Shown: positions 1,838-40,968, counted from the first letter of the stretch. The stretch: DNA of 64,000 nt from IMGVR_UViG_3300042465_005589:186001-250000, one strand, 5' to 3'. Notes: generated by a model from the letters alone, not told the origin. A program made the numbers and translations.

Positions 1838-2185
1838 ATGGAACTAACTATAAACAAAAATAAATTCAAAGTCAAAACTGTTATATCTCCCAAAGACACT
1901 AGTCGTGGTATGATGAATAAAAGATTTGACGATACTTTTAATGGTATGTTATTTATTATGTCAGATGGTCATCACTGTTTTTGGATGAAGAATTGTATAA
2001 TTTCATTGGATATCATTATGATTGAAGACGATATTATAACAAAAATTCACCACAACTGTCCTCCTTGTAAAACCAAAGATTGTAGAAACTATTGTGGTGA
2101 AGGTGATATGATACTTGAACTTCAAGGTGGTACCTGTAAAAAATTAGGGATTAAGTCCGGAGACAAAATCATTCATTACGATTGA
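1838..2185 (+). CDS. DUF192 family protein
   Basis: RGMM...GMLF...FWMKNCIISLDIIMI...ILELQGG..KLGIKSGD; start moved to ATG 1838 (MELTINK), just after TATTTATA 1825-1832. Confidence 0.85.
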   Translation: MELTINKNKFKVKTVISPKDTSRGMMNKRFDDTFNGMLFIMSDGHHCFWMKNCIISLDIIMIEDDIITKIHHNCPPCKTKDCRNYCGEGDMILELQGGTCKKLGIKSGDKIIHYD

Positions 2186-3582
2186 TTTATCTTTTCCTGT
2201 AACAATTTCACAAACTCATTCTGAATCATTTTTGTAAACTTAATATAAGGAGCATCTTCCGATTCTCTATTATACCCACCACTTCCTTTTGGTGGACGAG
2301 TACTTCTACCCATAAAGTTTAATCCTGAGATATTTGTAATACATTTGTGTCCACCACTATTTGCTTGAATGAAATCCCAAGCGTTTACCTTAATATCATC
2401 TAACATTTGTCTATGTTCTTCTGGCAATTCAGAAAATGGTTTTTCCATCATCTCACCAATATGTGTTAGTTTTTCTCTACCATTATCCATAGTTTTGAAA
2501 TCTTTACCATATAACGCAACAAAGTCTTTAAATGTAAATCCTGTTGATTCAGGGTTAAAATCTTTTGAAGATTCCGATATCCACTTAATTGTTGAAAGGG
2601 ATATTTCTCTTTGTTTTAATTGGTCTTCCCATTTTGATAATACTTCTTGAGCAATCTCACCTAAGTTAACACCTTTCAATTGACGTTCACCTTTAAATGG
2701 GTTACAAGACGCTTGAACTAAACCTAAAGGCCAAGCAATTACAATAAAATCAGCGTCAGGATTGTTTTTAAATGGTGTATATCTATCGTATGAACCGGGT
2801 TTAAACATTGAACCACCTCCGTATTGAACAATAACATTACCTAATACCTTAACATTAGGATTTGTTTGCATTGATTTAACGTAATCTTCTTTATTTTTTT
2901 CAAGCTCTTCCGGTTTAGCATATCCCTTTTCAACCATTATTCGTTTAATAGTTTGAAGGATATTTAATAATGATGGCGTACATTCCATAACCAACGTTTC
3001 TAAGAACCCTGGCTTATTTTTAAATGCTAATAATAGTTTGTTTGCAACTAACCCCATTAACATTTTATTTTTCTCTAACGATTTGTCCTTATCCAATTTA
3101 AATAAATAAGAAATTACTTGGTCTACTGAAATTTCATTAACCGCATAATTTGCAGAATCCACTGTTGAAATAAGTAATATATCTGAAGACGGGAATAATT
3201 CTTTTGGAGAAACTACTTGAGATATTGTTTCAACATTTGAACGAGAACTTCTAAATGATGTGGATTTAGTTTCTTCAGCTCCCGCTTGTCTATCGTGGTG
3301 GTCCGTATGAATCACAAACATTGGTTTTCCGTGAGCAAAATCTACCAATACTGGCATAACATCACCGGTTGCGTCATTCTTCTTTACAGCAAACTCTTTA
3401 TCGCCATATTGAATAATATGAGCATCCACCACTTTAATACCGTTGTTCTCAAGATATTGTTTCATAGCAATTGCCGTCGTTACCCCATCCAAATCTTGAT
3501 GAAAATATATTTCAGCTTTGGGGTATCGTTTAGCAAGAGCATTAATATCTCTTAAACCACTTTCTTTTATAAGTTTTTTCAT
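2176..3582 (-). CDS. DHH/DHHA1-family phosphoesterase with putative head-targeting leader
   Basis: HQDLDG, VDFAH, TDHHD and C-terminal SGGH motifs; N-terminus MKKLIKES. Confidence 0.8.
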   Translation of the reverse strand: MKKLIKESGLRDINALAKRYPKAEIYFHQDLDGVTTAIAMKQYLENNGIKVVDAHIIQYGDKEFAVKKNDATGDVMPVLVDFAHGKPMFVIHTDHHDRQAGAEETKSTSFRSSRSNVETISQVVSPKELFPSSDILLISTVDSANYAVNEISVDQVISYLFKLDKDKSLEKNKMLMGLVANKLLLAFKNKPGFLETLVMECTPSLLNILQTIKRIMVEKGYAKPEELEKNKEDYVKSMQTNPNVKVLGNVIVQYGGGSMFKPGSYDRYTPFKNNPDADFIVIAWPLGLVQASCNPFKGERQLKGVNLGEIAQEVLSKWEDQLKQREISLSTIKWISESSKDFNPESTGFTFKDFVALYGKDFKTMDNGREKLTHIGEMMEKPFSELPEEHRQMLDDIKVNAWDFIQANSGGHKCITNISGLNFMGRSTRPPKGSGGYNRESEDAPYIKFTKMIQNEFVKLLQEKINQS

Positions 3583-3583
3583 A

Positions 3584-3937
3584 TTACATTGAAGGTAAAA
3601 TAGTTATTGCTATAACATCTCCACCTTTAAGACCTTTACCTAAATTACAACTTCTATTTGTTGCGATAATCTCATCAACACTCGAAACACCAGGATATTT
3701 TGATGCAATATCACTTAACGTATCACCTGATTTAACTTTATATAGTTTAACATTGTAACCATAAGTTGCTTGAAGTCGTTTTGGGTCACCAAAACAATAT
3801 TTACCCCCCATTTCAGGTTTAATTTTCCCCATTTGAACATCAACACCTTTTTGTTGATTCATTTGTTCATTAACTAATCCGTATTTTGAAAGGATATCGC
3901 CTTTTTCTTCTTCTGAAATTATAAATCTTTTTGCCAT
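3584..3937 (-). CDS. LysM-domain protein with putative head-targeting leader
   Basis: YKVKSGDTLSDIASKY...EIIATN...LKGGDVIAI; N-terminus KRFIISEEEK..DIL..YGLVNEQ; late motif at 3953-3960. Confidence 0.85.
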   Translation of the reverse strand: MAKRFIISEEEKGDILSKYGLVNEQMNQQKGVDVQMGKIKPEMGGKYCFGDPKRLQATYGYNVKLYKVKSGDTLSDIASKYPGVSSVDEIIATNRSCNLGKGLKGGDVIAITILPSM

Positions 3938-3968
3938 AATAAATCTTTTAGTTATAAATATACCGAAA

Positions 3969-3993
3969 ATAAAAAAGAGGTTATAACACCTCT
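3969..3993 (-). terminator. Intrinsic terminator overlapping the methyltransferase stop codon
   Basis: aagaggt / acctctt stem (3975-3993) with a U tract on the minus strand. Confidence 0.6.
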
Positions 3994-4844
3994 TCTTTTA
4001 ATTCTAATTTTGTTTGTTTATGTTCATCAATTAACGATTGGACTCTTTTTCTCGCAATCTCTGTATAGTCCGGAGATAACTCAATCCCAATCCATCGTCT
4101 ATCCAATAACTCAGCAGCAAATGCCGATGTTCCACTTCCCATAAAAGGGTCAAGAACTATATCATTTTTATATGATAATATCTTAATTGCTTTTGATGGA
4201 ATATCCATTGAGAATGTTGCTTTAGTTAACGACCTAGTATCTGCAAAATATTCCCATCTACCAAAAACCAAGTTCATAAACTCTTTCTTATCTTCGTCCT
4301 GATAAACCATTTTATTTTTAGTTTTACCATCTTCTGTAGTTACTTCAGTTGGTGTACCTAACCACTGAGACTCCCCTTTGGTTAATTTCTTATTAGTTTT
4401 CTTGTAAGCTAGAATAATACATTCCTTAGGATTATAGATGTAAGGACAACTTGCGCTCATCCAAGAACCCCAAGCTGTTTGTCTAACTCTATGTGGGCTA
4501 TCTTCTGTAAGGTCAACCATTCCATAAAATTTAAACCCAACCTCTTTCATTTTCATCCAAAACTCTGCGTTGAATAATATTCTACCACCTCTTTCCTGTA
4601 CGTTAATTTCTATAGGAACGTTGATTGCTATCCGACCATCATCTTTTAATACTCTATAAGATTCTGTTAACCACTGCGTTGTAAAATCCCAATATTCATC
4701 CATAGGAATACTATCATTATAAACATCATATTTGATGTTAACTCCGTAGGGTGGTGATGTCACCAATAAATCAATTGAACCTTCCGGGAAAGTTTTCATT
4801 ACCTCAATACAATCTCCATTAATTATCTTTCCTGTTTCTATCAT
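3981..4844 (-). CDS. DNA methyltransferase, N4-cytosine/N6-adenine beta class
   Basis: Catalytic TSPPY near the N-terminus; SAM-binding VLDPFMGSGT near the C-terminus. Confidence 0.92.
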   Translation of the reverse strand: MIETGKIINGDCIEVMKTFPEGSIDLLVTSPPYGVNIKYDVYNDSIPMDEYWDFTTQWLTESYRVLKDDGRIAINVPIEINVQERGGRILFNAEFWMKMKEVGFKFYGMVDLTEDSPHRVRQTAWGSWMSASCPYIYNPKECIILAYKKTNKKLTKGESQWLGTPTEVTTEDGKTKNKMVYQDEDKKEFMNLVFGRWEYFADTRSLTKATFSMDIPSKAIKILSYKNDIVLDPFMGSGTSAFAAELLDRRWIGIELSPDYTEIARKRVQSLIDEHKQTKLELKEEVL

Positions 4845-4848
4845 TTTA

Positions 4849-5329: not shown

Positions 5330-5334
5330 AATTT

Positions 5335-6776: not shown

Positions 6777-8147
6777 TTAATTAATTCTCATTACGTAATA
6801 AGTCTCACCGGCAATATCAACACTATCATAATTACCATCATAACTATTCATAAAACCCCAACCTTCGGAATCAACTAATCCCTGAGCTAAAGCTGATTCA
6901 TCAACATATTCTTTAACAGGTAACCCATAATCATTAAGATACCCAATAGGGTCTCTTCTTACGTCTCTAACTAAACTCTCAACCATATTATCAATCATAT
7001 CTTCGGTTGGTTCAGTATCAACTTCAATATTATCTAATTCCTCTTGGAGTGCTTCAATTTGATTATCTAAATCTTCTTCGTAGTCATAATAATTTTCATC
7101 ATCCGAATCTAATTCAAGTTTTTGTTGTTCCAAATCCTCAATTTGAGATTCAAGTTGTTCTATTCTTTCTTCTTGCTCCGAAGTCAATTCATAATCATCA
7201 TCATTAAAATAACTTTCAGGATTCTCCCTCACTTGATATTCATAATCTTCTCTAGCAAATTCAACAATAGCATCTTCATCTAAATAATCATCAATAAAAC
7301 CTTTACTAAACCCATCAACACCAATATCATCAACATAACTTTCAGCATACTCTAATGCAGCTTTATCCATTTCATCGTGGGTTCCCACCGAATATTCCTC
7401 ATCTCTAAACCCATCAACTAAAACTTCGAATGAGGTTAAACCATAATGACTATATTTTGATACTGGATACATATCATATATGTCAGCAACATCCTCTGTT
7501 AATTCACTAATTCTCTCCTCAACATCTTCAATTTTATTTAATATTTCCACATTCTCATCTGGGTCACCATCTCTATGTTCATCATCATAATCCGCATTAA
7601 GTTCTTCTAATTGTTGAGTTAACAAACTTAATTCTTCTTTTTGTTCATCATTCAATACTGTAACTCTACCTTCACCTTCAAGCCATTCTAATAACGCCAT
7701 AGCCTTTAATCCCTCTTCATCATGGTTTTGAAAATTCCATTCATCATCTTCTCTTTTAGAATCCATCTCAGCTTGTTTACCCAAAAGTTCTTGTCTCTCT
7801 CTAATTTTCTCACGAGGAGTGTCCCTATCACTAATATATGATTTAACTCTCATATCACCAAGATTAGATACCTTAGTATTACTAATATTTAATGAACCAT
7901 CAACATAAGCAACATTTCCCAAGTTATCTGTTGGGGTTCCTTCAAGACTTAAATCTCCGGTTATCCATAATGGTTTACCTTCAAATCTTTTCATTTTAGT
8001 TATTGCTTTACCGTGATAACTACCTAACGACATTAATTGCAAATATTCTTCAGGAGATATTTTATAATATTCTTCCTCAACTTGTTCAACAATTTGTTTT
8101 ACAACTTGTAATAATTCTTTATTTGTTAAAATCATTTTCTTATTCAT
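6777..8147 (-). CDS. Highly acidic protein with short LRR-like beta repeats and putative head-targeting leader
   Basis: Leader LLQVVKQIVEQ; ITGDLSLEGTPTDNLGNVAYVDGSLNISNT repeats; long D/E-rich helical body; TATTTAT at 8152-8158. Confidence 0.75.
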   Translation of the reverse strand: MNKKMILTNKELLQVVKQIVEQVEEEYYKISPEEYLQLMSLGSYHGKAITKMKRFEGKPLWITGDLSLEGTPTDNLGNVAYVDGSLNISNTKVSNLGDMRVKSYISDRDTPREKIRERQELLGKQAEMDSKREDDEWNFQNHDEEGLKAMALLEWLEGEGRVTVLNDEQKEELSLLTQQLEELNADYDDEHRDGDPDENVEILNKIEDVEERISELTEDVADIYDMYPVSKYSHYGLTSFEVLVDGFRDEEYSVGTHDEMDKAALEYAESYVDDIGVDGFSKGFIDDYLDEDAIVEFAREDYEYQVRENPESYFNDDDYELTSEQEERIEQLESQIEDLEQQKLELDSDDENYYDYEEDLDNQIEALQEELDNIEVDTEPTEDMIDNMVESLVRDVRRDPIGYLNDYGLPVKEYVDESALAQGLVDSEGWGFMNSYDGNYDSVDIAGETYYVMRIN

Positions 8148-8237
8148 ATTAATAAATACCAGTAATTAAAAATAAATCTTTACAATTAACGTAAAAGGTA
8201 GATATTTATTGTTATAAACGTTTAAATAAAAATTATC

Positions 8238-8396: not shown

Positions 8397-8416
8397 TATT
8401 ATGTGTTTAAAAAAAT

Positions 8417-9313: not shown

Positions 9314-9342
9314 AGAAAATCCCCAATCAAGGGGATTTTTTT
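9314..9342. terminator. Bidirectional terminator between convergent genes
   Basis: aaaatcccc aatcaa ggggatttt with A/T tracts on both sides. Confidence 0.8.
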
Positions 9343-9625
9343 ATTTTCCAAAATGTTCTTTAATTATGTCAATACCTTCATCAATTTCATTAAAATCTCT
9401 TTCAGGTGCGAATAAATAACTCTTTGGTGATTCATCCGGAGATTCTACAATCATAAATGCCGGTACAAATTCGTTTTCAGTAATTTCAACAAACATATCG
9501 TATTCATCTTTGTGTTCGTTTATATCTCTTATAACAAACCCAATGTCATTTTTAATAAGTTGTTCCTTCATCATATCACAATATGGACAACCTTTCATCG
9601 TGAAAAGAATCAGTAACTTATCCAT
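9341..9625 (-). CDS. Glutaredoxin/thioredoxin-fold protein
   Basis: FTMKGCPYC active site; cis-Pro motif FVPAF. Confidence 0.85.
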   Translation of the reverse strand: MDKLLILFTMKGCPYCDMMKEQLIKNDIGFVIRDINEHKDEYDMFVEITENEFVPAFMIVESPDESPKSYLFAPERDFNEIDEGIDIIKEHFGK

Positions 9626-12384: not shown

Positions 12385-13743
12385 TTAGTTAAAATAATAG
12401 AACCCCATTCCTTCATCTGTCAATCGTTCTTTTAATTTCTCAGGAATTTTAACATTCGGATTACTATCCTTTAAATTAATAAATGCCAATTCAGGTAAAG
12501 TCATTAAACATTCGGGCAACGATTCTAATTGTTTGTTATTTGGTAACGCCAAGAAATTTAATAATTTTAAATTACAGATTGAATCAGGAATACTTTTACA
12601 AATCTTCTCTAATTTTAACGCTTCTAAATTTTTAAATCTTCCAATAGATTCCGGAACCACCAACGCAATATCCTCGTTTGATTTATTACTAATTAATAAT
12701 CTTTCAATCGTGTCCGGTAAACTATCAAATAATTCATCAAAACCATATAACGCAATGAATTTACCGGCAGCATTATCAGGGTATGCAATATCCACAACAT
12801 TACCTGAACCACCTTTAACCAATCCTTTCGCAAACTGTGGTTTAAAATATTCTTTAAGTTCTTCACCTTTACCATTTAAAAATTCAACCAAATTAATTTG
12901 TCTGTCTCTCCTATCCATATATTGGTTTGAAGGGAAGTGAAATTGATATCTTTCTTTAGGTAATCCAGTCTTCTTACCAAATTCCGTAGCATTATTAGGT
13001 AAAATAACATATAATGGACCGTCTTTAATATAAGTGTAGAAATAACTACCACCAACGTTTGACGTACACCAATTAGTTTCATCAAACTCATCTCTCGTAT
13101 CGTAGTAACCACCAAAGTAATCAGCCGCAGCGTCACCAATTTTTGTTTTATCCTCTATTTTAACAATAGTCCAATTAGGACCAACGAAATCAATAGTAGA
13201 CCCTTCAAATTTATAAGGGTTTTCTTTAGTAATTCTTTCTTCTTTTGCCGATTTAGAATCTTTAGTTAATTTGAATTCATCAACCGCTAATGATAAAGTT
13301 TGAGGAGTATACTTATTAATGTCTCTTTCACCTACAGGTAATCTACTTTTAAATCTTTCAAATTTTAGTAAATCAACATTTAACTTATCCATATCTTCTA
13401 TGAATAAACGTCGATATTCTTTAGCGTTTTGCTTATATTCCGGAGTACCTACTTCATCTTCTAATTTAGGTTGAATAAAGTTCTTCAACATCCATTGAAC
13501 ATATTTACCAACATGTATTTTACCCATGTCTTCAAAAGTCGCACTTTCTTTATCAAACCCTTGAGGGACAGTTGTTGAAGGGTCCCCAAAGATAATATTC
13601 TTTAATGTTTCAAAATCCATAGCGCCTTTAGGTTTTTCACCAGGTTTTCTTGGTTTGTCAGAAGGTTTCACCAATTTGTCATATAAGACTTGGAAACGTG
13701 ATTGTTCTGTAATTAAAGTTGATAGTGTATTAGTTAGTCTCAT
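12385..13743 (-). CDS. Putative head-packaged protein with WCT-motif domain and C-terminal leucine-rich repeats
   Basis: Leader MRLTNTLSTLITEQ; TNWCTS...YFYTYIKDGPLYVI...RYQFHF; LRRs VPESIGRFKNLEALKL / IPDSICNLKLLNFLAL / LPECLMTLPELAFINL; late motif at 13759-13766. Confidence 0.75.
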   Translation of the reverse strand: MRLTNTLSTLITEQSRFQVLYDKLVKPSDKPRKPGEKPKGAMDFETLKNIIFGDPSTTVPQGFDKESATFEDMGKIHVGKYVQWMLKNFIQPKLEDEVGTPEYKQNAKEYRRLFIEDMDKLNVDLLKFERFKSRLPVGERDINKYTPQTLSLAVDEFKLTKDSKSAKEERITKENPYKFEGSTIDFVGPNWTIVKIEDKTKIGDAAADYFGGYYDTRDEFDETNWCTSNVGGSYFYTYIKDGPLYVILPNNATEFGKKTGLPKERYQFHFPSNQYMDRRDRQINLVEFLNGKGEELKEYFKPQFAKGLVKGGSGNVVDIAYPDNAAGKFIALYGFDELFDSLPDTIERLLISNKSNEDIALVVPESIGRFKNLEALKLEKICKSIPDSICNLKLLNFLALPNNKQLESLPECLMTLPELAFINLKDSNPNVKIPEKLKERLTDEGMGFYYFN

Positions 13744-13818
13744 TTTAATTGTTTTTATTATAAATATTTGTTTTTTCTAAATAATTCGCCAAAACCCATT
13801 TACTTTTGTTCAGCGGGA

Positions 13819-18320: not shown

Positions 18321-19685
18321 TTATTGAGTTTTTTGATTGTAACCAATTAATGATTTCATTCTTTCAAACTCTTCATTAATTTGTTTCGCTTTTTTAGGTT
18401 CAGTAGATTCTAATTTAGTCATAATATCGCTAGCTTTACTACCACCATCCTTATCATTAACCACAGGTTGTGGCGATTTATTATACGCCATTCTTTTAAG
18501 TTTTGCTAACATATTATCTTTTCTAATCTTATTACGTTTTTTGTTAACATCTGATTCTCCTGTATTCGCCCAATCAGGGTTATTACCTGTTTTGGAAGAA
18601 CCTTCAATATTATTTGTCACCCATTCCTCATTTGGATGGATTTCATCATAGTCTAAATTTTCTAAAGCCGCCGCAGTAAAATTATCAATATAATCTTCAA
18701 CAGCCTCTGATGGGACATACGCCTTTTTATCCATTTTAGCTAATTCACCATTTCCTTTTGGGAAAAATTTTGGATTTGTATTATATTCTCCTTTAGAACC
18801 ATCCTTTAAATAATCTTTCATTTTTTGAGCAACCGCCTTAAGACTATCTTCATTTTCTTTCCCATCTTTTTTATGGATTTGTTCATATTTGTTATATCCC
18901 GGAGTATTACCTATTATTTTTGAGTTGGTTTTTTCCGCTGGGTCTTTAACGTTTTTAGATTTTTGTTCTATTATAATTTTTTCAATTAAATTAACCATTT
19001 CACTTTCACTCATTCTAACAGAATTACTTTCTTCCATCCCATGTTTTGTAGAAATTTTATTTACTTTTTTAATAGATTTGTCAGATTTTGAATTTTTAAG
19101 TTTAACACCTCTACCAACTAAAACATCTTTACGAGTAACTTTACCATCACCGGTTAAATCAGGGAATTTTTTACCTTCCTTAGTTTCAAATTTTTTACCA
19201 TCAACCTCAAAATCTTTATCACCTGTTTTTCTAGCTTGAGATAATGCACCGGTAAAAGCATTTCCTTCATCTGTTTCAGATTTTTTACTTTGTCTTCTTT
19301 GACGACCTTTTAAAGATTCATTCATCGAATCACCACAAAATTGTTTTGTTCTATCATCATCCGGACCAAATTTATCCATATGGTATTTACAAGACTCTTC
19401 ATTCTCCACATTTGTTTCTGTTTCAATATCTTCTTCTTCTTGAACATAATCAAATTCATCTTTATTATTAATGTCTTCAACATCATAAATCCCTTCATCC
19501 ATCATTTTACTACCACATTCGGTACATTCCCCCTCATACATGTTACCACCACATTCACAAACTTCAGAATCTTCTTTGATTGATGTTTTAATTTTAGAAA
19601 CTAAAGTTTCGGCTTTCTCCCCTAAATTTTCTTTTAAAACTTTAGAAATCATTTTCTCTAAATAAGTTATATTTAATTTTTTCAT
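18321..19685 (-). CDS. Putative prohead core / internal head protein
   Basis: Several (L/I)-x-E motifs (ISKVLKE, IEKIIIEQ, QINEE), CECGG..GECTECG, EF-hand/dockerin-like DLTGDGKVTRKD; late motif at 19700-19707. Confidence 0.6.
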   Translation of the reverse strand: MKKLNITYLEKMISKVLKENLGEKAETLVSKIKTSIKEDSEVCECGGNMYEGECTECGSKMMDEGIYDVEDINNKDEFDYVQEEEDIETETNVENEESCKYHMDKFGPDDDRTKQFCGDSMNESLKGRQRRQSKKSETDEGNAFTGALSQARKTGDKDFEVDGKKFETKEGKKFPDLTGDGKVTRKDVLVGRGVKLKNSKSDKSIKKVNKISTKHGMEESNSVRMSESEMVNLIEKIIIEQKSKNVKDPAEKTNSKIIGNTPGYNKYEQIHKKDGKENEDSLKAVAQKMKDYLKDGSKGEYNTNPKFFPKGNGELAKMDKKAYVPSEAVEDYIDNFTAAALENLDYDEIHPNEEWVTNNIEGSSKTGNNPDWANTGESDVNKKRNKIRKDNMLAKLKRMAYNKSPQPVVNDKDGGSKASDIMTKLESTEPKKAKQINEEFERMKSLIGYNQKTQ

Positions 19686-19722
19686 TGTTGTTTTTTTATT
19701 ATAAATATATTAGTTTTTTACT

Positions 19723-27541: not shown

Positions 27542-28054
27542 TTAGTTCAGTTCTTCTACGTCTTCTTGAATGACTTCACCACCGTCTCTTCTTTCTTGAG
27601 CCTCCAATACAGTATCTAAATTCCAACCATCATACGCAGTAAGTTTCTCACAACCTCTACCCATCCAATAGAACTCAGACATCCACTCTTCCCATTTGGA
27701 ATCAACCAACTTAATAAAGTTCTCGTCATTACCTCTATCTCGGTATCGTTGGATAAATTCCTCTTTTCTATTGTCATCCGGATAAACTAAATAAAAGAAA
27801 AGACAATTATCTAATAATGCGTCTCTAACTTCTTTATGTGATGACACAAAAATGTATTTATATTTACCTATACAATTTTTAATATGGGTAATGTAGTTCT
27901 GTGGAAACTCAGGATTTCTTACCTTTTCTCCATTCTCATTAACAACCCAACTGAAATTACTTGAATCCGAATCCAATGTAGTCCCTGTGTTGTTTTTATG
28001 ATACGTTGTTTTTCCAACACCAGGAAACGCAGATACTATCTTAGTTCTCAACAT
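27542..28054 (-). CDS. P-loop NTPase, nucleotide kinase-like
   Basis: IVSAFPGVGKTT, LDSDSSNF, IFVSSH. Confidence 0.8.
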   Translation of the reverse strand: MLRTKIVSAFPGVGKTTYHKNNTGTTLDSDSSNFSWVVNENGEKVRNPEFPQNYITHIKNCIGKYKYIFVSSHKEVRDALLDNCLFFYLVYPDDNRKEEFIQRYRDRGNDENFIKLVDSKWEEWMSEFYWMGRGCEKLTAYDGWNLDTVLEAQERRDGGEVIQEDVEELN

Positions 28055-29298: not shown

Positions 29299-29907
29299 TT
29301 ACATCATTTCGTTTAAGTTAGAACCTTTCATAAAAATAGCCCCTTGACTAACTTTAACAGATTCCAATTGTTTATTTATTTTTTCAAGGTCTTCAATCCT
29401 TGTGTTCTTTAAAGATAGTTCTTTTCTAAGTTTCTGTAAAGTTTCTTGAAGAAGTAATGTCTTATCATTTGATTTTTCTATCTCAACAATCTTCTCGACT
29501 TCAATTATTCTCTCAATAATTATTGGTTCAGGTTTGTCACAAATGTTGTCTAAATTTGTGACAGGGATTTCCACCCTCACTTCTTTGATAACTTCTTTAT
29601 CAACATATTTAATAACCTCAACTTCTCGGATTATTTCTTTAATTACCTCAATCTCTTTGATAACTTCAACCGGAACTTCAACCCGTATTTCACGGATTAC
29701 TTCAATTTCTACCTGTTTTTCACCAACAATACCCGTTTTTCCCAAATCATCACCAAGTAACCCATATTTCGTAATGTTAAACCCTTCGGTATAACATTTG
29801 GTTATGAACTTGTCCACATCCTCAATATTATTTAATTTACAATACTCGTTGACGCTACTTAATTGACTAGCCGTTAGTTTTATTTGTGACACGTTCTTTG
29901 TTTTCAT
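29299..29907 (-). CDS. Protein with VEVIKE / VEVPV repeats and a coiled coil
   Basis: IEVIREIRVEVPVEVIKEIEVIKE repeats at about 29545-29720. Confidence 0.75.
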   Translation of the reverse strand: MKTKNVSQIKLTASQLSSVNEYCKLNNIEDVDKFITKCYTEGFNITKYGLLGDDLGKTGIVGEKQVEIEVIREIRVEVPVEVIKEIEVIKEIIREVEVIKYVDKEVIKEVRVEIPVTNLDNICDKPEPIIIERIIEVEKIVEIEKSNDKTLLLQETLQKLRKELSLKNTRIEDLEKINKQLESVKVSQGAIFMKGSNLNEMM

Positions 29908-30909: not shown

Positions 30910-31131
30910 TTAGTGAGTCCCATTTGTTAATGAAATTCCGTGTTTAATACCTGAAATAAAATCTTGAGTTTCATCTTCAGTCATATTCTTATATTTATAT
31001 CCAACTATAATTCCAATCTCATTACCACAGTCACTCAAGTCACCGGTATAGTTCATTCTCCCAACATTTTCTTTTAATGAGTTGGCAATCCAATTTAAAT
31101 CATTTGTATCAAAAGTTCTTTCAGTAATCAT
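30910..31131 (-). CDS. Hypothetical protein
   Basis: Operon tiling. Confidence 0.65.
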   Translation of the reverse strand: MITERTFDTNDLNWIANSLKENVGRMNYTGDLSDCGNEIGIIVGYKYKNMTEDETQDFISGIKHGISLTNGTH

Positions 31132-31346
31132 TACTTATCAAATAATTTAAATTCCTCATTTACGTGACTACAATCATCACATCTGTAAGTCGGAAAAGGT
31201 ACAATAGTGTCTTCTTGACTTCCCGTTAACAACTTGTTAACTTTTTTTATCATCGTAACTTCTTTGAAATAGATACTATCGCACTGCTCACATACTAATG
31301 TAGGTTGTTTCTTTAAATCAATCTTTGGTTGTAATAAATCGTCCAT
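31131..31346 (-). CDS. Zinc-ribbon protein
   Basis: CEQC...CDDC. Confidence 0.75.
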   Translation of the reverse strand: MDDLLQPKIDLKKQPTLVCEQCDSIYFKEVTMIKKVNKLLTGSQEDTIVPFPTYRCDDCSHVNEEFKLFDK

Positions 31347-33223: not shown

Positions 33224-33439
33224 ATGAGCACACAAATAACTATAAGTAATATTACCGGAGTATCTCCTTTTAAAGTGTATCTATGTGATAACCCTATTAC
33301 TTTATCAATATATATAGACACAATTTCAACGTTTCCATATAATGTGGTTATACCTCCTATTTGGAGTACGTTGACATCATTTAATATAAAAGTTATAGAT
33401 AATAATAATTGTGAATCAATTTTAAATTTAACATTATAA
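33224..33439 (+). CDS. Small beta-rich structural protein (paralogue of 36568-36873)
   Basis: ITISNITG.SPF.VYLCD...IKVIDNNNCE. Confidence 0.75.
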   Translation: MSTQITISNITGVSPFKVYLCDNPITLSIYIDTISTFPYNVVIPPIWSTLTSFNIKVIDNNNCESILNLTL

Positions 33440-33440
33440 T

Positions 33441-34343
33441 ATGCCTTGTAGTTCTACATATTGCCTTTCAAACACTGGTTACCCAACATTCGACGATGTA
33501 TACTTTAGTGCCGGAACACATAATTCTCAACTATATTGGACCGGTCAAACTAATAGTTTATTTATCTATTATAATACCGGGTCAACCCAATGGTGTTTAT
33601 CAACCGTTTTAGATGGAGTTTGTTTATTATCAGGTCAATCACCTTGTTTTAACCCATGTCCGGATTTAGACGATGTTTATTTCTCTAGCGGAACATGTCC
33701 CACTCCGACCCCAACCCCAACAGCATATTGTTCTAGTTTAAATTTTTCAGCAATTTTTGATTGTGATGTTGACACACCAACTCCCACACCTACACCCACA
33801 TCCACTCCAACCTCAACGCCAACTCCAACCCCTACCAACCCATGTAATGTTGTTATAAGTGCAACAATTCAAAATATCCCAAATACTCCCACACCAACAC
33901 CAACATTAACACCTACACCTACTCCACCTGTTGCTCGTACTTGTACTTTTGAGGGAGCGGTAACTTTCAACACAATAGATGATAGTATTGTATGTCCGTA
34001 TAGTTATCAATTCCAAAGTTGTTATAATGGTATGATGTATTACACAACAAATCAAATTGTAACTCCAGGTAATATTCCAATTGAAAAGTTTCACGTTTAT
34101 CAAGCCAATGTTAATGGAATTGTTATGTGTGTTGGATATATTGGAGTTAATAATAACACTATTGGTAAAGACGATATTACACTATTATTAGGACCATACG
34201 GATTTTTAGATGATGGTGATTGTATATTATGTTCTCAATCAATAGTCCCTACACCAACACCAACACCGACACCAACAGAAACCATACTCCCATCAGAATG
34301 TACTGACTGTGGAATGGAAGGTTACTTATATAATAAAACTTAA
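33441..34343 (+). CDS. Cys-rich tail-associated protein with four Pro-Thr tracts
   Basis: PTPTPTPT linkers separating Cys-containing modules. Confidence 0.8.
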   Translation: MPCSSTYCLSNTGYPTFDDVYFSAGTHNSQLYWTGQTNSLFIYYNTGSTQWCLSTVLDGVCLLSGQSPCFNPCPDLDDVYFSSGTCPTPTPTPTAYCSSLNFSAIFDCDVDTPTPTPTPTSTPTSTPTPTPTNPCNVVISATIQNIPNTPTPTPTLTPTPTPPVARTCTFEGAVTFNTIDDSIVCPYSYQFQSCYNGMMYYTTNQIVTPGNIPIEKFHVYQANVNGIVMCVGYIGVNNNTIGKDDITLLLGPYGFLDDGDCILCSQSIVPTPTPTPTPTETILPSECTDCGMEGYLYNKT

Positions 34344-34353
34344 AAATTAAAAT

Positions 34354-36564
34354 ATGCCATTTTCAGCATCAACTTGTTTAACAAATTCAGGAACTGTCGC
34401 TTTAGGAGGGACATTTAACATATATTCAAATGTTGATGGATATACCACTCCTTTCCAAACTAACGTAAGTTATACTAGTTTATTTGGTCCGTTATGCCCA
34501 TATGTTATGGGTAATGTACCTAATGGGACTAATACAATTAGAATTATTGATATCACAACCACATGTTGTGCAACTATTGAATTACTATCTAATGATTTAT
34601 GTACAACTTGCGATTTATCATTTGATTCATATCAAACTAATAATGTTGGGATAATTGTTGCCGGAGAATTAACAGGTAGTTGTGAAAATGACATCACCGA
34701 TTATAGAATATTTTGGTATGGTCCAAATTCGTCAACTAATCTTGCATTTACATCAGGTTATGGAAGCTCCTTTGTACCATACAATTTAACACATCCATTA
34801 GTAGGAATTAACTCACCAATGGTTGAAGCCGGAACATATATTCCAGTTATTGATAAGGTAAAACTAAATGGTCTTAATTATTCTCAAACAGGTGGAACAG
34901 GTTATATTCAAGCAGAATTAGAATGTTTTAACGCGACAACAGTTAATGTCCAACCTTTTACTTGTGATAATGGAACAGTACCGTTACCGAACGATTATAC
35001 TCATAGGGTTAATTTTTCTGCAGCAGCCGCAGGTACCACTCCATTAACATTACAATCAACTTTTGATTTAGACATTACAACTAATTATTTTTCGTGGAAA
35101 TTTAAAGGGGATGCAATTCCGGATTTTCTTAAAATAACATTCTATGGTTCAGATTATTCCGACCCAATTATTTTAGAATATTGGGAAATTGGGGGAAACA
35201 TTTCAATTTCCAATGCGGAGTATTTGACATTTCCAAAATCCGCTAGCACCACAGATTATTTTTCAAAAGTAACCTCATTAACCTCATTATCAAGAAATGT
35301 TGGCGATTATCTAATTTTAGAAGTAATTCCAAACCAATTTAACTCACAAACAAATTGGGATTTTTATTTTACTTGTATGAATAGTTTTGATTGTGATTTA
35401 TGTTTATATGATTATTTAAATACACCATATAAAATAAAATCATCATCTATTACAGGTATTACGGGTTCGTGTTCTTCAATTGAGGTCAAATTTGATGTAT
35501 CCGGATGTACCGAAAGTTCAATAATAAATAGCGATATTTACAAATATCAAAAAACAGACGCAAATCCACTCTCAACAACAAGTTTTAATACTAATACATA
35601 TACAGATGATATCACGGGATTAAGAAATAGAACAACAGGTAGTTTGGATTGGGACGCAACATCCTGCAGTATGCTTTTTGGTATAAATGTTCCTCCAATT
35701 TGTTCACCTATACCTAACACAAACATAATATCTTTTAAAAAAGAAAATACCGGACCATCAGGACAAGGTGTAATTAAAATGGAATTTAGTAGTTTAAGTG
35801 ATTTAGTTGATTATAAATCGTCTTATGATTTGACATTACCTTATTCAGGAACACCATTTAATTCTGCCGACCCAAATTATTATAGATATTTTCAATTATT
35901 TATACCAAAAAACTTAACTCCAAATACTAATTGTGGTGATGGAACGTCTCTTTTAACGTATTATTTACATTATTCTAGTATAGTAACAACAGGAACTACC
36001 GGAGGAAATTATACTTTAAACATAACAATGCCAACAATATCTGACGATATCGCACCGTTTGACCCTTGTGACATAAATTGTCAATTAAATATTAATAGTG
36101 TTGTAACAACAGTTAATAATTCTTCAACAGGTGCAACAAATGTTGAGGATTTTACTTCTAACACCGGTTCTAAATACGTTGTACCTTTTGGAGTAACAAA
36201 ATATTTTGTTGAGTTTCCTCCTGTCACTAACAGTGCTAGTACTATTCAAGGAGTATATTATCTTAACAATTATCTTAATGCAACAGTACCTTTTTCAGGT
36301 AGTAGTTCTCCCTATACTCGAATACCTTCGTTATCCGCAGTAACTTGTAATAATTTCACATCTATTGGGGTATCATATACCCAAGTACAATTTGTATACA
36401 TATATAATTATAAAGTTGAATTGACCGACCAAAATAATTTTAAGTCTTTTAGAATTTTAGCAACACCTATAGTTAACGGAGCACCTAGTGGTATATTCAG
36501 TGATATCGTCGCAACGGTGGTTAATGGTTCATTAACGTACGCAAACCCATCATATACTTTTTAA
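34354..36564 (+). CDS. Large tail-associated structural protein
   Basis: 736 aa, S/T/N-rich, beta-type, many Cys; located in the tail cluster. Confidence 0.75.
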   Translation: MPFSASTCLTNSGTVALGGTFNIYSNVDGYTTPFQTNVSYTSLFGPLCPYVMGNVPNGTNTIRIIDITTTCCATIELLSNDLCTTCDLSFDSYQTNNVGIIVAGELTGSCENDITDYRIFWYGPNSSTNLAFTSGYGSSFVPYNLTHPLVGINSPMVEAGTYIPVIDKVKLNGLNYSQTGGTGYIQAELECFNATTVNVQPFTCDNGTVPLPNDYTHRVNFSAAAAGTTPLTLQSTFDLDITTNYFSWKFKGDAIPDFLKITFYGSDYSDPIILEYWEIGGNISISNAEYLTFPKSASTTDYFSKVTSLTSLSRNVGDYLILEVIPNQFNSQTNWDFYFTCMNSFDCDLCLYDYLNTPYKIKSSSITGITGSCSSIEVKFDVSGCTESSIINSDIYKYQKTDANPLSTTSFNTNTYTDDITGLRNRTTGSLDWDATSCSMLFGINVPPICSPIPNTNIISFKKENTGPSGQGVIKMEFSSLSDLVDYKSSYDLTLPYSGTPFNSADPNYYRYFQLFIPKNLTPNTNCGDGTSLLTYYLHYSSIVTTGTTGGNYTLNITMPTISDDIAPFDPCDINCQLNINSVVTTVNNSSTGATNVEDFTSNTGSKYVVPFGVTKYFVEFPPVTNSASTIQGVYYLNNYLNATVPFSGSSSPYTRIPSLSAVTCNNFTSIGVSYTQVQFVYIYNYKVELTDQNNFKSFRILATPIVNGAPSGIFSDIVATVVNGSLTYANPSYTF

Positions 36565-36567
36565 GAT

Positions 36568-36873
36568 ATGACAGCTATTAACATACAGTCAATCACAGGT
36601 TCAAATTTTCCATATACAATTTACGCTTGTGATGTCTATGGAAATCAATGTGCGTTAATCGCCACAATCGTAACATCTGTACCCCCTGACAATATTATTG
36701 TATTACCATCTCAATTTAATAGTGTAGCCGCTGTCGGTATTAAAGTTATTTATGGAGATGGTTGTGAAAGATTTGAAGTTGTACTTTGTAACTTATTACC
36801 TCCGGTACCAAAACAATTCCAAGATTATCAATATTTTGAATTTATGGATTTTGATATATACGATTTCCAATAA
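36568..36873 (+). CDS. Small structural protein (paralogue of 33224-33439)
   Basis: INIQSITG..FPYTIYACD...IKVIYGDGCE; C-terminal KQFQDYQYFEFMDFDIYDFQ. Confidence 0.75.
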   Translation: MTAINIQSITGSNFPYTIYACDVYGNQCALIATIVTSVPPDNIIVLPSQFNSVAAVGIKVIYGDGCERFEVVLCNLLPPVPKQFQDYQYFEFMDFDIYDFQ

Positions 36874-36904
36874 CAAACTATTTATATTATAAAACAAAAA
36901 ACCA

Positions 36905-39900
36905 ATGAGATTAACAGATAGAAATTTTCCACCTTACATATCACCAGACGCATTAGTTCACATTGTATTAACAGGTGATACGACAGATAGCCCTCAAGGT
37001 TCATCCTTTAAAGCTACGATTGGTTCATTAGATAATGCCGTAATCATAACAGGAACCGGAATTAATTCGTCAGTTAGAAAATCAGTAGGGAATATTGCAT
37101 CAGGCAATTATTCAGCTGTTTTAGGTGGACAAAATAATTCAGGGACAACATACTTTTCAACCGTAGTTGGGGGATTTTGTAATATATCATCAGGTTACAA
37201 CTCATTTATTGGTGGCGGTAAATACAATACCTCTTCTGATTATATTTCAACAATTGGTGGTGGTAAATGTAACATTGCCTCTGGTAATACATCAACAATT
37301 GGGGGTGGTAGTGGTAATTTTTCTTCTTATTGTCGTTCAACAGTTGGGGGAGGCTCATATAACACCGCTTCCGGTAAAGCATCAGTAGTTAGTGGTGGTC
37401 AATCTAACACTTCTTCCGGTTTTTATTCAACAATTGGTGGTGGTAGTGTTAACACAGCGAGTAGTATATCATCAACAGTTGGTGGGGGGCAATATAATAT
37501 TGCTTGTGGTCAATTTTCTACAATTGGAGGAGGGGGAGGTTCATATTCATTAATTAGTAATAAAGCGTACGGTATTGGTTCTACAGTCGCAGGTGGGATG
37601 AGTAATCAGTCATTAGGTAATTATAGTACAATTGCCGGAGGTGCTAGTAATTTTAGTCTTTCCGGTACATCTACAATTGGAGGAGGGAGTAACAACTGTT
37701 CTACAAATTGTGGTTCCACAATTGGAGGGGGTGGTTTTAATACAAGTTCAGGATGTTACTCAACAATTGGTGGTGGAAATAGTAATTTATCAAACGGTAA
37801 TTGTTCAACAGTTAGTGGTGGTCATTTTAACAAAATATGTCAATCTCAAAATTATAATAATAATTATTTTTGTTTAGGCGATGTTATTGGGGGAGGAAAT
37901 TGTAACACCATAAATACAAATACTTATGTTGGTTATACTTGCACCGGTGGTAACACAATTGGTGGTGGTTACACAAATATTATAACACCATACCTTAACT
38001 TTAACACGATTGGTGGTGGTCAAAAAAATAAATCTTACGGTAATAGTTCAACAATTGCCGGTGGACAGGAAAATATAACTTCCTTTGGTTGTTCAACAAT
38101 TGGTGGGGGAATTTTAAATGTTGCAACAGGAAATACATCAACTATTGCGGGTGGTTGTGGAAACCAAGCAATAAATAGTTTCTCAACAATTGGTGGTGGT
38201 ACAAATAATATATCATGTTTTCAATCATTTGTTGGTGGAGGTAGATGTAATAAATCTTTAGGTAGTTATTCCACAATATCAGGAGGTCAAAATAATTGTA
38301 ATGTTCTCAGCCATTCTGTTATTGGTGGAGGATTTAATAATAAAATAACTTGTACATATTCAACAATTGCTGGTGGTAGAAATAATTGTGTATGCGGAAC
38401 AGATTCTTCAATAGTTGGTGGTTCCGGTAATAGCATCAATAGTAATGTATTGAATCCATTTAGGTCAGTAATTGCCGGTGGTGTGAATAATAAATTATGT
38501 CAATCATACGGGTTTATTGGAGGTGGTAGAGGCAATCAAATATCAGGTACAACTGGTATTGGTGAAGATTCTGTTATTGTCGGTGGATTCTATAATAAAA
38601 CATATGGTGTTAGAGCAGCAATCTTAGGGGGAGCACTTAACTGTTTAGGTTCAAACACTTATGGTAGTGGTCTTGTAAGTGGTAATAATAATAGAATTTC
38701 TGTACCATTTGGTATAATTGGTGGAGGACAAGTTAATGTAATATGTGGTGACCACTCAATTATTGGTGGTGGTGCGTTAAACTTTATTGGTAATTCATCA
38801 GTAACAAACTCATATTACGCAAATAATTGTTCAATAACTTTATATGGTAATCAGACATCGTCATTTAATGTTAACGACCTTTTACTAACATGGGATTTTA
38901 GTTGTTCAAGAAATGTTGTTATAACTGCATCTACGTATTCGGGCGGATATACTTATTTGGATGTTAGTGGGTCAACAATATTTGTAAATCCATTCACATC
39001 GTCCGCTCCAATAATTAGAAATTTAACAGATAGTTTACCAGGATTCCAAAATAGTTTTATTGGTGGTGGTTACGCAAATACCGTATCCGGAATTACAGGG
39101 TTTATAGGTGGAGGAGGTTATAATAAAGTCTCAGGAAATGGAGGAGTTATTGGTGGTGGTCGTTGTAATATATCAAGTGGTAATCAATCATCGATAACCG
39201 GAGGATATGATAACAAATCTATTGGGTGTCAATCATCAATCGTTGGTGGTGGTCGTAATTGCTCTATTGGACATTGTTCCTTTATTGGAGCTGGTTCATT
39301 CAACACCACATGTAATTATCATTCAACACTTACCGGTGGTAAGTGCAATATATCATCAGGTAATTATTCATTTATTGGTGGTGGTTCTGGAAATACCGTT
39401 TCCGGTGGTGTGTCATTTATTGGTGGGGGTCAATTTAATAGCGTACAAGGAATTAAATCAACAATTGGTGGAGGATGTAATAATATAATCTTTACATCCG
39501 GTTCAACTATAGGTGGTGGTATTACTAACACAATTTGGTCGCCTAATTCAACAATTACCGGTGGTCTTTCAAATATTATTTGTGCTGCCGCTAGTGATTC
39601 CTTTATCGGTGGTGGTGGTTGTAACATTGCATATAGTGGTAACTCAACAATTAGCGGAGGTTTTCAGAACAAAACATGTAATTGGGTTGCAACAATTGGT
39701 GGAGGTTTTAAAAACACTGCGTCAGGTGGTTGTTCAACAATTGGAGGTGGTTATAATAACTGCTCAATTGGTGCTTGTTCATTTGTTGGGGGAGGTAGTC
39801 AACACAGTGTCGCAGGGTGTGGTTCATCAATAGTTGGTGGTTCACTTAATATAATTTCGGGGAACTGTTCAACAATTGGCGGAGGAAATGGAAATATAAT

Positions 39901-40795
39901 TTGCAGCAACATGTCAACAATTGGTGGTGGTTGTCAAAATACAACTTGTGTAAGGTTTTCATTTATAGGAGGTGGTTATAAAAACTGTATAATTTGTCAA
40001 ACAGCGTATGGATACTCAACAATTGTAGGTGGATGGACAAATAGAACTCACGGTGAATCTAACTTTATTGGTGGTGGTCAATTCAACTGCATTGGAACAC
40101 CTGCGTTATCAGGTTCATCATTCTTATCTGTAATTGTTGGTGGAAATACAAATGGTGTATGTGATACAGCTTCTTTTATTGGTGGTGGTGATGGAAATGT
40201 CGTATTTAGCGGTTCTTCGGCAATAGTTGGTGGAGCCAGTAATATTTCATGTGCTGAACATTCTTTTATTGGAGGTGGGTGTGCAAACACTGTCACAGGT
40301 TGTTATTCATCAATTCTTGGTGGAGCCTATGGATGTGCACCTCGTTTTGGACAAAGGTCATTTGCTTCAGGTACTTGGGCTGGCGCTGGTTCAAGAGGTG
40401 CGTCACAACAAATTGATTTAGTAGGTAGAAATAAAACAACAAGTGGAAGTGCTGTCAACATATTTTTAGATGGGGCAAGTCAACGTATATCCGTAATTGC
40501 AGGAACTGCAATGTTTGTTACAATAAATATTGGTGGTATTAAATCAGATGGTTCTGCAGGAGCTCACTATATAAGAAAAGTCGCAATTAAAAATGTAGGT
40601 GGTGCAACTTCTTTAATTGGTGCGAGTCCGGTATCAGTTATTGGAACTGATGTGGAAGATAACGCATCTTATGACGTTGCAATTAGTGCTGACAATACTA
40701 ACGATGCTTTAGATATACAAGTCACAGGAGCTGTTGGTGAAACTTTAAGATGGACTGTCCATATTGAAGGTGTAGAAATAGTTTACGGAATATAA
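36905..40795 (+). CDS. Gly/Cys-rich repetitive tail fibre (beta-solenoid adhesin-like)
   Basis: 15-aa repeat STIGGGxxNxASGxx over about 1000 aa; globular C-terminal domain; late motif at 36879-36886. Confidence 0.8.
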   Translation: MRLTDRNFPPYISPDALVHIVLTGDTTDSPQGSSFKATIGSLDNAVIITGTGINSSVRKSVGNIASGNYSAVLGGQNNSGTTYFSTVVGGFCNISSGYNSFIGGGKYNTSSDYISTIGGGKCNIASGNTSTIGGGSGNFSSYCRSTVGGGSYNTASGKASVVSGGQSNTSSGFYSTIGGGSVNTASSISSTVGGGQYNIACGQFSTIGGGGGSYSLISNKAYGIGSTVAGGMSNQSLGNYSTIAGGASNFSLSGTSTIGGGSNNCSTNCGSTIGGGGFNTSSGCYSTIGGGNSNLSNGNCSTVSGGHFNKICQSQNYNNNYFCLGDVIGGGNCNTINTNTYVGYTCTGGNTIGGGYTNIITPYLNFNTIGGGQKNKSYGNSSTIAGGQENITSFGCSTIGGGILNVATGNTSTIAGGCGNQAINSFSTIGGGTNNISCFQSFVGGGRCNKSLGSYSTISGGQNNCNVLSHSVIGGGFNNKITCTYSTIAGGRNNCVCGTDSSIVGGSGNSINSNVLNPFRSVIAGGVNNKLCQSYGFIGGGRGNQISGTTGIGEDSVIVGGFYNKTYGVRAAILGGALNCLGSNTYGSGLVSGNNNRISVPFGIIGGGQVNVICGDHSIIGGGALNFIGNSSVTNSYYANNCSITLYGNQTSSFNVNDLLLTWDFSCSRNVVITASTYSGGYTYLDVSGSTIFVNPFTSSAPIIRNLTDSLPGFQNSFIGGGYANTVSGITGFIGGGGYNKVSGNGGVIGGGRCNISSGNQSSITGGYDNKSIGCQSSIVGGGRNCSIGHCSFIGAGSFNTTCNYHSTLTGGKCNISSGNYSFIGGGSGNTVSGGVSFIGGGQFNSVQGIKSTIGGGCNNIIFTSGSTIGGGITNTIWSPNSTITGGLSNIICAAASDSFIGGGGCNIAYSGNSTISGGFQNKTCNWVATIGGGFKNTASGGCSTIGGGYNNCSIGACSFVGGGSQHSVAGCGSSIVGGSLNIISGNCSTIGGGNGNIICSNMSTIGGGCQNTTCVRFSFIGGGYKNCIICQTAYGYSTIVGGWTNRTHGESNFIGGGQFNCIGTPALSGSSFLSVIVGGNTNGVCDTASFIGGGDGNVVFSGSSAIVGGASNISCAEHSFIGGGCANTVTGCYSSILGGAYGCAPRFGQRSFASGTWAGAGSRGASQQIDLVGRNKTTSGSAVNIFLDGASQRISVIAGTAMFVTINIGGIKSDGSAGAHYIRKVAIKNVGGATSLIGASPVSVIGTDVEDNASYDVAISADNTNDALDIQVTGAVGETLRWTVHIEGVEIVYGI
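37080..40370. repeat. Degenerate 45-nt coding repeat array
   Basis: Recurrent tcaacaattggtggtgg core; about 65-70 units estimated from length; non-repeat insert at about 38790-39040. Confidence 0.9.
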
Positions 40796-40797
40796 AA

Positions 40798-40968
40798 TTA
40801 TTCCGTTTTTTTACCTAAACCCTCATATATCCTTAAAAGTTTTAAAGATTCATTGTAGTTTTTTTCTAATCTATCTAATTCTTTTTCGTTGACACCTTTT
40901 TCACATGCGTCCTCGTAAATTTTTTTAGATTCAGTTACCAAATTCGATATTGTTCTAATCAGTTTCAT
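40798..40968 (-). CDS. Small protein with putative head-targeting leader, 56 aa
   Basis: Manual translation MKLIRTISNLVTESKKIYEDACEKG...; TATTTATA at 40973-40980; missed by the ORF track. Confidence 0.7.
   Translation of the reverse strand: MKLIRTISNLVTESKKIYEDACEKGVNEKELDRLEKNYNESLKLLRIYEGLGKKTE

Follow-up and report, generated by a model that had tools for sequence, protein, structure and literature searches.

The 64,000-nucleotide stretch analysed here, referred to below as the window, comprises bases 186001-250000 of the 318,164-bp viral contig IMGVR_UViG_3300042465_005589 and encodes several unrelated proteins that start with short leader peptides ending in (L/I)-x-E. Coordinates without a prefix are those of the window, and "genome" refers to the whole contig, which has about 30% G+C and 388 genes by the gene call made in this analysis. 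Judging by its genes, the phage is a distant jumbo relative of T4 (318 kb). We consider it probable that the leaders are T4-type capsid-targeting propeptides that have greatly expanded in number, being carried by about 45 unrelated late proteins. According to this reading, which is modelled on the T4 internal proteins and Alt, the N-terminal module would carry its protein into the prohead core during assembly. The module is a beta-strand-like h-x-h-(T/S)-E segment (h, hydrophobic; x, any residue), behind which there is often an amphipathic helix with a second (L/I)-x-E at its end. A protease would then cut after the Glu and free the mature protein inside the head, and at least some of these proteins may exit with the DNA at infection. 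That the leaders contain a cleavage signal is well supported by the alignments and the model described below; their actual cleavage is suggested by the logic of the sites and by one complex model, while the location of the tagged proteins in the head and their roles as injected effectors are proposed by analogy.

The head module of the phage lies outside the window, at genome 36-54 kb, and follows the T4 gene order. It encodes a portal protein (PHROG portal match, E = 6e-66), a very acidic scaffold-like protein of 516 residues (genome 41145-42695), a gp23-type major capsid protein (E = 1.9e-65) and a prohead protease of the Peptidase_S77 family (Pfam PF03420, E = 1.5e-24; genome 43090-43815). 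An earlier reading of the window, made from the sequence alone (the sequence-only reading), had suggested looking for a gp21-like protease, and the S77 protein, which is 36% identical to T4 gp21 and matches PDB entry 5jbl (E = 9e-15), is of this type. It keeps the motifs ELNH94P and GIS157SRG. His94 and Ser157 are taken as the catalytic pair because both aligned positions are Ala in the solved T4 gp21 chain 5jbl, which we read as inactivating substitutions.

In the peptides given below, an arrow (↓) marks the predicted cut, with P1 as the residue before it and P1' as the residue after it. The sequence-only reading had taken (L/I)-x-E for a gp21-type site, in agreement with the major capsid protein of this phage, where ..ASFLINE↓ATSDG aligns with the cut in T4 gp23 (..GSFLTE↓AEIGG) and with ..KQIVSE↓ANVTG of Flavobacterium phage immuto. 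The leaders show the same kind of site. Among 55 distinct orthologues of the protein encoded at 21182-21784, P1 is invariably Glu, P3 is I or L and P4 is L, I, M or V (55/55 each), with a variable P2 and Gln at P1' in 50. All 17 distinct orthologues of the 18321-19685 protein have Glu at P1 and L or I at P3, and the leucine-rich-repeat (LRR) protein, with 13 distinct orthologues, has Glu at P1 and Ile at P3 in 13/13 and T, V or L at P2. The orthologues of the acidic protein 6777-8147 begin M(G/R)RKLRLTESELYKVIKKIVE↓Q; their aligned P1 column holds Glu in 9 of 11 cases, the site being shifted by one residue in the other two, and P3 is I, L or M. Across these families P4 is nearly always hydrophobic and P2 is variable. 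The signature of a hydrophobic P4, L/I at P3, a free P2 and an invariant Glu at P1 matches the rule for T4 gp21. Processing in T4 fails when P1 is Asp (PMC9026906).

The tightest leader class, class A, reads MK(I/L/V)IITE-SQY-xx-L-x-E and is found entirely outside the window. Twenty-two proteins begin MK(I/L/V)IITE(S/N/T/D)(Q/R/K)(Y/L/F)xx(L/I), and a few more have mis-called starts. In all, class A heads 25 otherwise unrelated proteins in this genome; their genes lie mostly at genome 107-181 kb and 286-288 kb, often in tandem arrays. A scan of IMG/VR for MKxIITExQY returned at least 119 stretches, many of them on contigs of 200-320 kb. When residue 7 was left free, the scan returned the same matches, all 140 of those listed having Glu there, and a looser set of open reading frame (ORF) starts gave 263 Glu, one Asp and one Gln at this residue. 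Residues 13 and 15/16 were likewise left free in the scan: among the matches listed, residue 13 is L or I in 92/94 and a Glu stands at 15 or 16 in 63/94, so that the leader contains two (L/I)-x-E sites. The leaders are phage-specific, class A being nearly absent from prokaryote genomes: 596 Gb of these yielded only six matches, each on a short contig of a metagenome-assembled genome (MAG; L296-L301). Furthermore, three IMG/VR records with class-A leaders are at least 90% complete, and all three encode an S77 protease.

A complex was modelled from residues 30-205 of the protease, the sole partner tried, and the first 40 residues of a class-A protein. The score was 0.63 vs. 0.00 for the best control; the mark applied to this score is reached by 51 of 78 solved complexes and by 2 of 108 mismatched pairs. 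The runs had at least 77% of the contacts in common, and the predicted local distance difference test value of the partner was at least 48. Only leader residues 1-10 make contacts, with H94, S157, S158, R159 and R65 of the protease; Glu7 is placed beside Ser157, Arg65 and Arg159, and leader residues 3-5 run along strand 160-164. As a prediction, the model supports binding of the leader by the protease.

The motif is concentrated at protein N-termini. The strict pattern [LIVM][LIVMT]xE[QSN] within the first 45 residues occurs in 53 of the 388 proteins of the genome vs. 15.8 expected (p = 2.5e-14) and, in the interval covered by the sequence-only reading, in 9 of 53 genes vs. 2.2 expected (p = 2.7e-4); three of these nine (9341-9625, 27542-28054 and 31131-31346) are without the late motif described below and look like chance matches. 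The union of two patterns covers 74 proteins vs. 28 expected, an excess of about 46. Per position, [LIV][LIV]xE has a rate of 0.016 in residues 1-10 vs. 0.0033 internally, and [LIV]I[TNSIK]E shows an 18-fold enrichment at N-termini; the excess of residues 1-10 over internal positions thus ranges from 5- to 18-fold.

The leaders are also linked to a promoter-like motif, TATTTAT. The most enriched family of upstream 8-mers is ATATTTATA, and TATTTATA stands upstream of 61 genes, about 10-fold over expectation. Copies of TATTTAT stand before the genes for scaffold, protease, portal, tail sheath and tail tube; from these structural genes the motif is judged to be of late type, and by it the tagged genes would be expressed late. 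Genome-wide, TATTTAT(A) has two preferred distances to the ATG, 10-13 nucleotides (nt; 33 genes) and 20-26 nt (39 genes), and the former implies leaderless or nearly leaderless mRNAs; in the window, the copies at 8152-8158 and 40974-40980 have the short spacing and those at 3954-3960, 13760-13766 and 19701-19707 the long one. Leader-positive proteins number 44 of 188 in TATTTAT-bearing transcription units vs. 9 of 200 in the others (odds ratio 6.5, p = 3.6e-8), so the leaders go with late-type promoters and not with the presumed early genes; an equal share in early proteins is what the sequence-only reading had named as adverse to its proposal. As a control, the same pattern at residues 60-105 showed no association with TATTTAT units. 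A second enriched upstream motif, TATCTTTG, fits what we take to be the TAnnTTTG element of Bacteroidota promoters. At genome 140-152 kb (L013:618-12373), the DNA upstream of many class-A genes contains a C5-6...G5 hairpin with a T-run, followed by TATTTAT, and these genes look like self-contained terminator-promoter-gene cassettes. The window also encodes a sigma-70-like factor (23549-24349), located among DNA-metabolism genes, which might read the TATTTAT promoters; a phmmer comparison of this factor with class-A cargo gave no match.

Beyond class A, the leaders fall into several further classes. One of them, ..(S/T)EEEKxxIxxxH....h-h-x-E-Q, includes the window LysM protein; M(K/R)Lxxxhxxh-h-x-E includes the window LRR and 56-residue proteins; MKELIRRILRE.. 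is a third; and xRLTES(E/D)LxxhIxxIhxE(Q) is seen in the acidic protein orthologues and in an internal module of the 18321-19685 protein. Class A is this last module in its N-terminal form. The idea of a single leader family was dropped, as a class-A hidden Markov model misses the window genes; the sequence-only reading had merged several classes into one.

Leaders are modular, interchangeable between unrelated cargo and end at the same junction. After removal of 17 residues, the 25 class-A proteins of this genome form 20 BLAST clusters, and 118 class-A proteins (the same 25 plus the IMG/VR matches listed) form 52; among members without paralogues, BLAST alignment is limited to residues 1-16 or 1-23. 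The cargo domain of the 386-residue class-A protein at genome 115146-116306 has homologues that bear a class-A, EEEK-, ELIRR-, MKLxxL- or FDLKKFL-type leader, and in one homologue an internal linker takes the place of the leader. Nearly all of the homologue leaders read end in h-h-x-E, about 11-14 residues before a conserved K(Y/F)V. Similarly, the cargo of genome 140250-140621 has a class-A leader here and a IESIIRRVLVEE leader in a relative.

The same junction logic applies to the DHH protein of the window, whose weak Pfam DHH match starts at residue 25. The window form begins MKKLIKE↓SGLRD, the orthologues in four IMG/VR relatives (499 residues) begin MKIIITESQYKMLIKE↓SGIRD, and homologues in 635-642-kb phages begin M(L/I)xKYxQFINE↓EVG (e.g., MLRKYGQFINE↓EVGFKN), i.e., three different leaders are found at one junction. 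The possibility that MKKLIKE is simply the native N-terminal helix of the fold was ruled out, as the orthologues bear full class-A or other leaders at that junction. A single nucleotide (1 nt) separates the DHH gene from the LysM gene upstream, whose late-type promoter it thus shares. In relatives (L024, L078, L094) the methyltransferase and DHH genes adjoin, and in the window (2176-4844) the LysM gene stands between them, which identifies it as an inserted cassette. The cassette apparently went in exactly where the DHH leader lies, and this leader is reduced from MKIIITESQYKMLIKES to MKKLIKES. How such arsenals are renewed over time is suggested by this cassette, placed precisely at a leader, and by the exchange of leaders on one and the same cargo.

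All eight leader peptides quoted in the sequence-only reading are present at the genes named there (Table 1), and seven are backed by orthologue conservation or by the late-promoter context; the eighth, KIKEN of 19723-20496, has no late motif, and its N-terminus is not conserved in orthologues, MRKIKLTEN being seen in just 2 of 14. That most of these genes follow the late motif directly also holds, with TATTTAT 11-23 nt before the ATG in five of the eight and the LysM copy serving the DHH gene as well. The view that the tagged genes are dispersed among early ones describes the window fairly; most members, however, form arrays at genome 100-185 kb. We regard the leaders of the LysM, acidic, LRR, 18321-19685 (N-terminal and internal), 21182-21784 and 56-residue proteins as well supported, and comparison with orthologues supports that of the DHH protein.

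Table 1. Leader-bearing genes of the window and the late-type motifs that precede them (window coordinates).
Feature	Position	Strand	Leader or remarks
DHH-family phosphoesterase gene	2176-3582	-	leader MKKLIKE↓S, encoded 3562-3582
LysM-domain protein gene	3584-3937	-	24-residue leader MAKRFIISEEEKGDILSKYGLVNE↓Q (ends ...YGLVNE↓Q), encoded 3866-3937
TATTTAT late-type promoter motif	3954-3960	-	23 nt before LysM ATG
Acidic 456-residue protein gene	6777-8147	-	leader MNKKMILTNKELLQVVKQIVE↓Q (ends ...VKQIVE↓Q), encoded 8085-8147
TATTTAT motif	8152-8158	-	11 nt before acidic protein ATG; same place in all orthologous loci
C-terminal leucine-rich-repeat protein gene	12385-13743	-	leader MRLTNTLSTLITE↓Q, encoded 13705-13743
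TATTTAT motif	13760-13766	-	23 nt before LRR protein ATG
454-residue protein gene, no informative match	18321-19685	-	leader MKKLNITYLEKMISKVLKE↓N (...ISKVLKE↓N), encoded 19629-19685
Internal leader-like module of the 18321-19685 protein	18963-19022	-	SVRMSESEMVNLIEKIIIEQ, residues 222-241; ends ...MVNLIEKIIIEQ
TATTTAT motif	19701-19707	-	22 nt before ATG of the 18321-19685 gene
257-residue Lys-rich protein gene	19723-20496	-	claimed leader MKIKE↓N doubtful
200-residue protein gene, conserved clade-wide	21182-21784	-	40-residue leader ending ...INRIREKHGIINE↓Q, encoded 21665-21784
56-residue protein gene	40798-40968	-	leader MKLIRTISNLVTE↓S, encoded 40930-40968
TATTTAT motif	40974-40980	-	12 nt before ATG of the 56-residue gene

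Some of these genes deserve comment. The LysM domain is recognised by Pfam with E = 5e-7, and the leader of this protein resembles MSKKLIITEEEKDEIKSLHNINE↓Q of a paralogue-less protein at genome 124880-125470. The LRR protein has a weak Pfam LRR_14 match; four of the window leader proteins, the acidic one among them, have no informative match in Pfam or PHROG. The internal module of the 18321-19685 protein is conserved as (R/K)LTESE(L/M)xxLIExIxxE, and in L187 it has a different N-terminal part before it, while the C-terminal half that follows is the same. The 21182-21784 gene, whose leader contains both ...STINE... and ...GIINE↓Q, is without its own TATTTAT and overlaps the upstream gene by 17 nt. 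The leader type of the 56-residue protein, M(K/R)Lxxxhxxhh-x-E, occurs also on the LRR protein and on homologues of the genome 115146-116306 cargo domain. A 199-residue protein (47816-48415) begins MKKTLKES, resembling the DHH leader, without a late motif, and is a probable non-member.

Elsewhere in the genome, the recognised cargo includes PG_binding_1 and DUF5872 domains, and proteins with an HExxH motif were noticed by eye. In relatives, class-A cargo comprises phage lysozyme (four proteins), extracytoplasmic-function (ECF)-like sigma factors (two), Peptidase_M78, LysM and DUF5872. No replication enzyme is among the recognised cargo, and most cargo has no annotation in Pfam or PHROGs.

Other explanations of the leaders were weighed against this material. 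The propeptides may be cleaved from proteins that are not injected, serving either as transient accessories of the prohead core or scaffold, which are degraded or expelled, or as structural internal proteins. T4 gp22, gp67 and gp68 have the same sites and are destroyed (PMC9026906); moreover, five leader proteins are encoded inside the head module (genome 37993-39174, 44593-45312, 49736-51103, 51106-52098 and 52495-53808), and several, including the window protein 6777-8147, are very acidic like scaffolds. We nevertheless judge this unlikely, since much of the cargo consists of folded enzyme or binding domains (DHH, LysM, PG_binding_1, LRR, lysozyme, M78) with no obvious scaffold role, and the turnover of cargo and swapping of leaders recall the hypervariable internal proteins of T-even phages (PMC3012670). 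Alternatively, the strand and helix could form an uncleaved docking or oligomerisation tag that binds a common hub such as the capsid exterior, a tail or baseplate adaptor, a chaperone or a chaperonin. Internal copies serving as linkers between domains would suit such a tag, as would the binding by strand addition predicted in the complex model, and the N-terminus of T4 gp23 targets fusion proteins to GroEL (PMC3012670). An invariant Glu, with almost no Asp or Gln, next to a free P2 is, however, typical of a protease site and not of a packing helix; the leader site coincides with the maturation site of the capsid protein, and the sole partner tried, the protease, passed the controls of the complex model. 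An uncleaved tag thus seems to us quite improbable.

It is hardly credible that the shared start is a feature of DNA or translation, such as the start of a leaderless mRNA or a recombination handle, with a peptide devoid of any role. In 33 genes TATTTAT indeed stands just 10-13 nt before the ATG, which would make many of the mRNAs nearly leaderless, and the LysM cassette was apparently inserted precisely at the DHH leader. Yet the class-A Ile, Thr, Gln and Tyr residues are encoded by freely varying synonymous codons, the DNA upstream shows no relationship, and many members are operon-internal without a promoter of their own, which means that selection acts at the protein level rather than on DNA; the DNA-level explanation was rejected on this codon evidence. 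Amino-acid conservation in class A reaches residues 13-16, and the same peptide module is also found internally. The shared start could nevertheless serve as a recombination handle and at the same time encode a working peptide. The capsid-targeting reading, which we prefer, has weak points as well. The phage is uncultured, and the complex model is a prediction in which the fold of the partner has low confidence. The lysozyme and ECF-like sigma cargo could act late in the cytoplasm, where packaging is not obviously needed; the internal leader-like modules may mean that the module is a binding helix and not strictly an N-terminal signal; and short look-alikes on probable non-members (e.g., 47816-48415) can mislead. 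About 45 different proteins in one head have a precedent only in phages of the phiKZ/SPN3US type, not in those of the T4 type, and the leader consensus differs from the T4 IPIII targeting sequence (MKTYQEFIAE), although T4 leaders differ among themselves, so that likeness to IPIII is not strictly defining (PMC9026906).

The T4 capsid targeting sequence is nevertheless the closest parallel. In both systems, a short N-terminal leader (about 10-20 residues) ending in (L/I)-x-E is found on unrelated, fast-evolving proteins, a protease of the gp21 family is present, and the genes stand apart from the head cluster and have late or late-type promoters of their own. For the packaging of T4 IPIII its first 10 residues are enough, and gp21 cuts them off (PMC9026906). 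The differences are that MKTYQEFIAE of T4 is replaced by MKIIITE-SQYxxLxE and other classes, that the leader is here often bipartite with two sites and occurs in several interchangeable classes and internal copies, and that there are about 45 putatively tagged genes vs. 3-4 in T4, with cargo that includes recognisable enzymes. T4 Alt, an ADP-ribosyltransferase that travels in the head and is delivered with the DNA, has an N-terminus (MELITE-LF) near the class-A MK(L/I)IITE-S and loses a propeptide of about 7 residues to gp21 (PMC9026906). Unlike our proteins, Alt is also processed C-terminally; the likeness noted here concerns the leader.

The jumbo phages phiKZ, 201phi2-1 and SPN3US likewise have about 50 head proteins, many of which are ejected into the host, and cut after Glu in propeptides with redundant sites (PMC5694885, PMC10052503). 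In these phages the motif is S/A/G-x-E and the propeptides often exceed 100 residues (PMC5694885), whereas leaders here have 7-40 residues and L/I/V at P3. The S/A/G-x-E motif was not seen in our leaders, P3 being L, I or V in all families examined. Phages of the phiKZ type have a distantly paralogous protease, and the remainder of their head is not T4-like. The Dar proteins of phage P1 are defence-countering proteins that are loaded into the head (via DarA/Hdf) and injected, their loading depending, in contrast to the present case, on a hierarchy of packaging proteins. Our literature searches found no large-scale families of targeting leaders outside the T-even phages, which is weak evidence of novelty.

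A broader proposal can be put forward only tentatively, as we think it somewhat doubtful: that in a whole clade of T4-like phages of roughly 280-320 kb, probably infecting Flavobacteriia or other Bacteroidota, more than 10% of genes carry interchangeable, protease-removable head-loading tags, that each virion delivers dozens of enzymes and binding proteins, and that tag plus late promoter forms a plug-in site for cargo. If true, DHH phosphoesterases, cell-wall binders, lysozymes, M78 peptidases and even sigma-like factors would be among the proteins delivered. If the capsid-targeting reading itself is right, the proteins that a large uncultured phage clade packages and injects could be predicted from the combination of a late promoter, an N-terminal h-h-x-E leader and a gp21-type protease, and this rule would indicate dozens of unannotated candidates for host-takeover or anti-defence proteins. 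The tag-and-cut loading of T4 would be ancient and scalable rather than a T-even peculiarity, with protein delivery far above the T4 scale, and new short tags for targeting would become available for testing, along with a protease and its well-defined substrate.

The host is probably a member of the Bacteroidota. The six MAG contigs with class-A matches are most likely mis-binned phage DNA and as such give a hint at the host: four of the bins are Bacteroidota (two Flavobacterium, one Dokdonia and one Saprospiraceae). The capsid protein has its nearest cultured relatives in Flavobacterium phage immuto (40% identical) and in a Microcystis phage, the identities being about 40-43%. Neither megablast of the structural region nor tblastn with the genome 115146-116306 and 21182-21784 proteins gave a match among cultured phages; there is thus no close cultured relative to supply proteomics, only distant ones such as immuto. 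Immuto (vB_FspM_immuto, NC_055915; L020-L022) has an S77 protease and recurrent leaders of its own, in the forms MENFDLKKFLVENKL..LLxE and MKKQILSEQFxRMQxLAGIITE↓S; the former type (MENFDLKKFLVENKLT..LLxE) is found on four proteins and the latter (MKKQILSEQFxRMQxLAGIITES) on two. With both leaders and protease, immuto is a practical test system.

Several other features of the window were recorded. A repeated gene pair at 590-1397, with paralogues at genome 66590-67352 and 261076-261946 and TATTTAT upstream, consists of a 50-residue ORF (MxxPKxxEDxKKxKxxISxxxEL...) followed by a Cys-rich ORF that ends in an HNH-like motif (HIDHIIP), and may represent a cassette similar to a homing endonuclease. 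The proteins encoded at 22386-23213 and 29299-29907 share runs of repeats of the EVIKEIIVEV or VEKIVEKIIEVPV type. Finally, the region 33224-51500 is a probable block of structural genes, rich in Cys residues and (Thr-Pro)n linkers, with a Gly/Ser-rich repeat protein of 1296 residues (36905-40795) and two large proteins of 1016 and 1005 residues (48450-54517).

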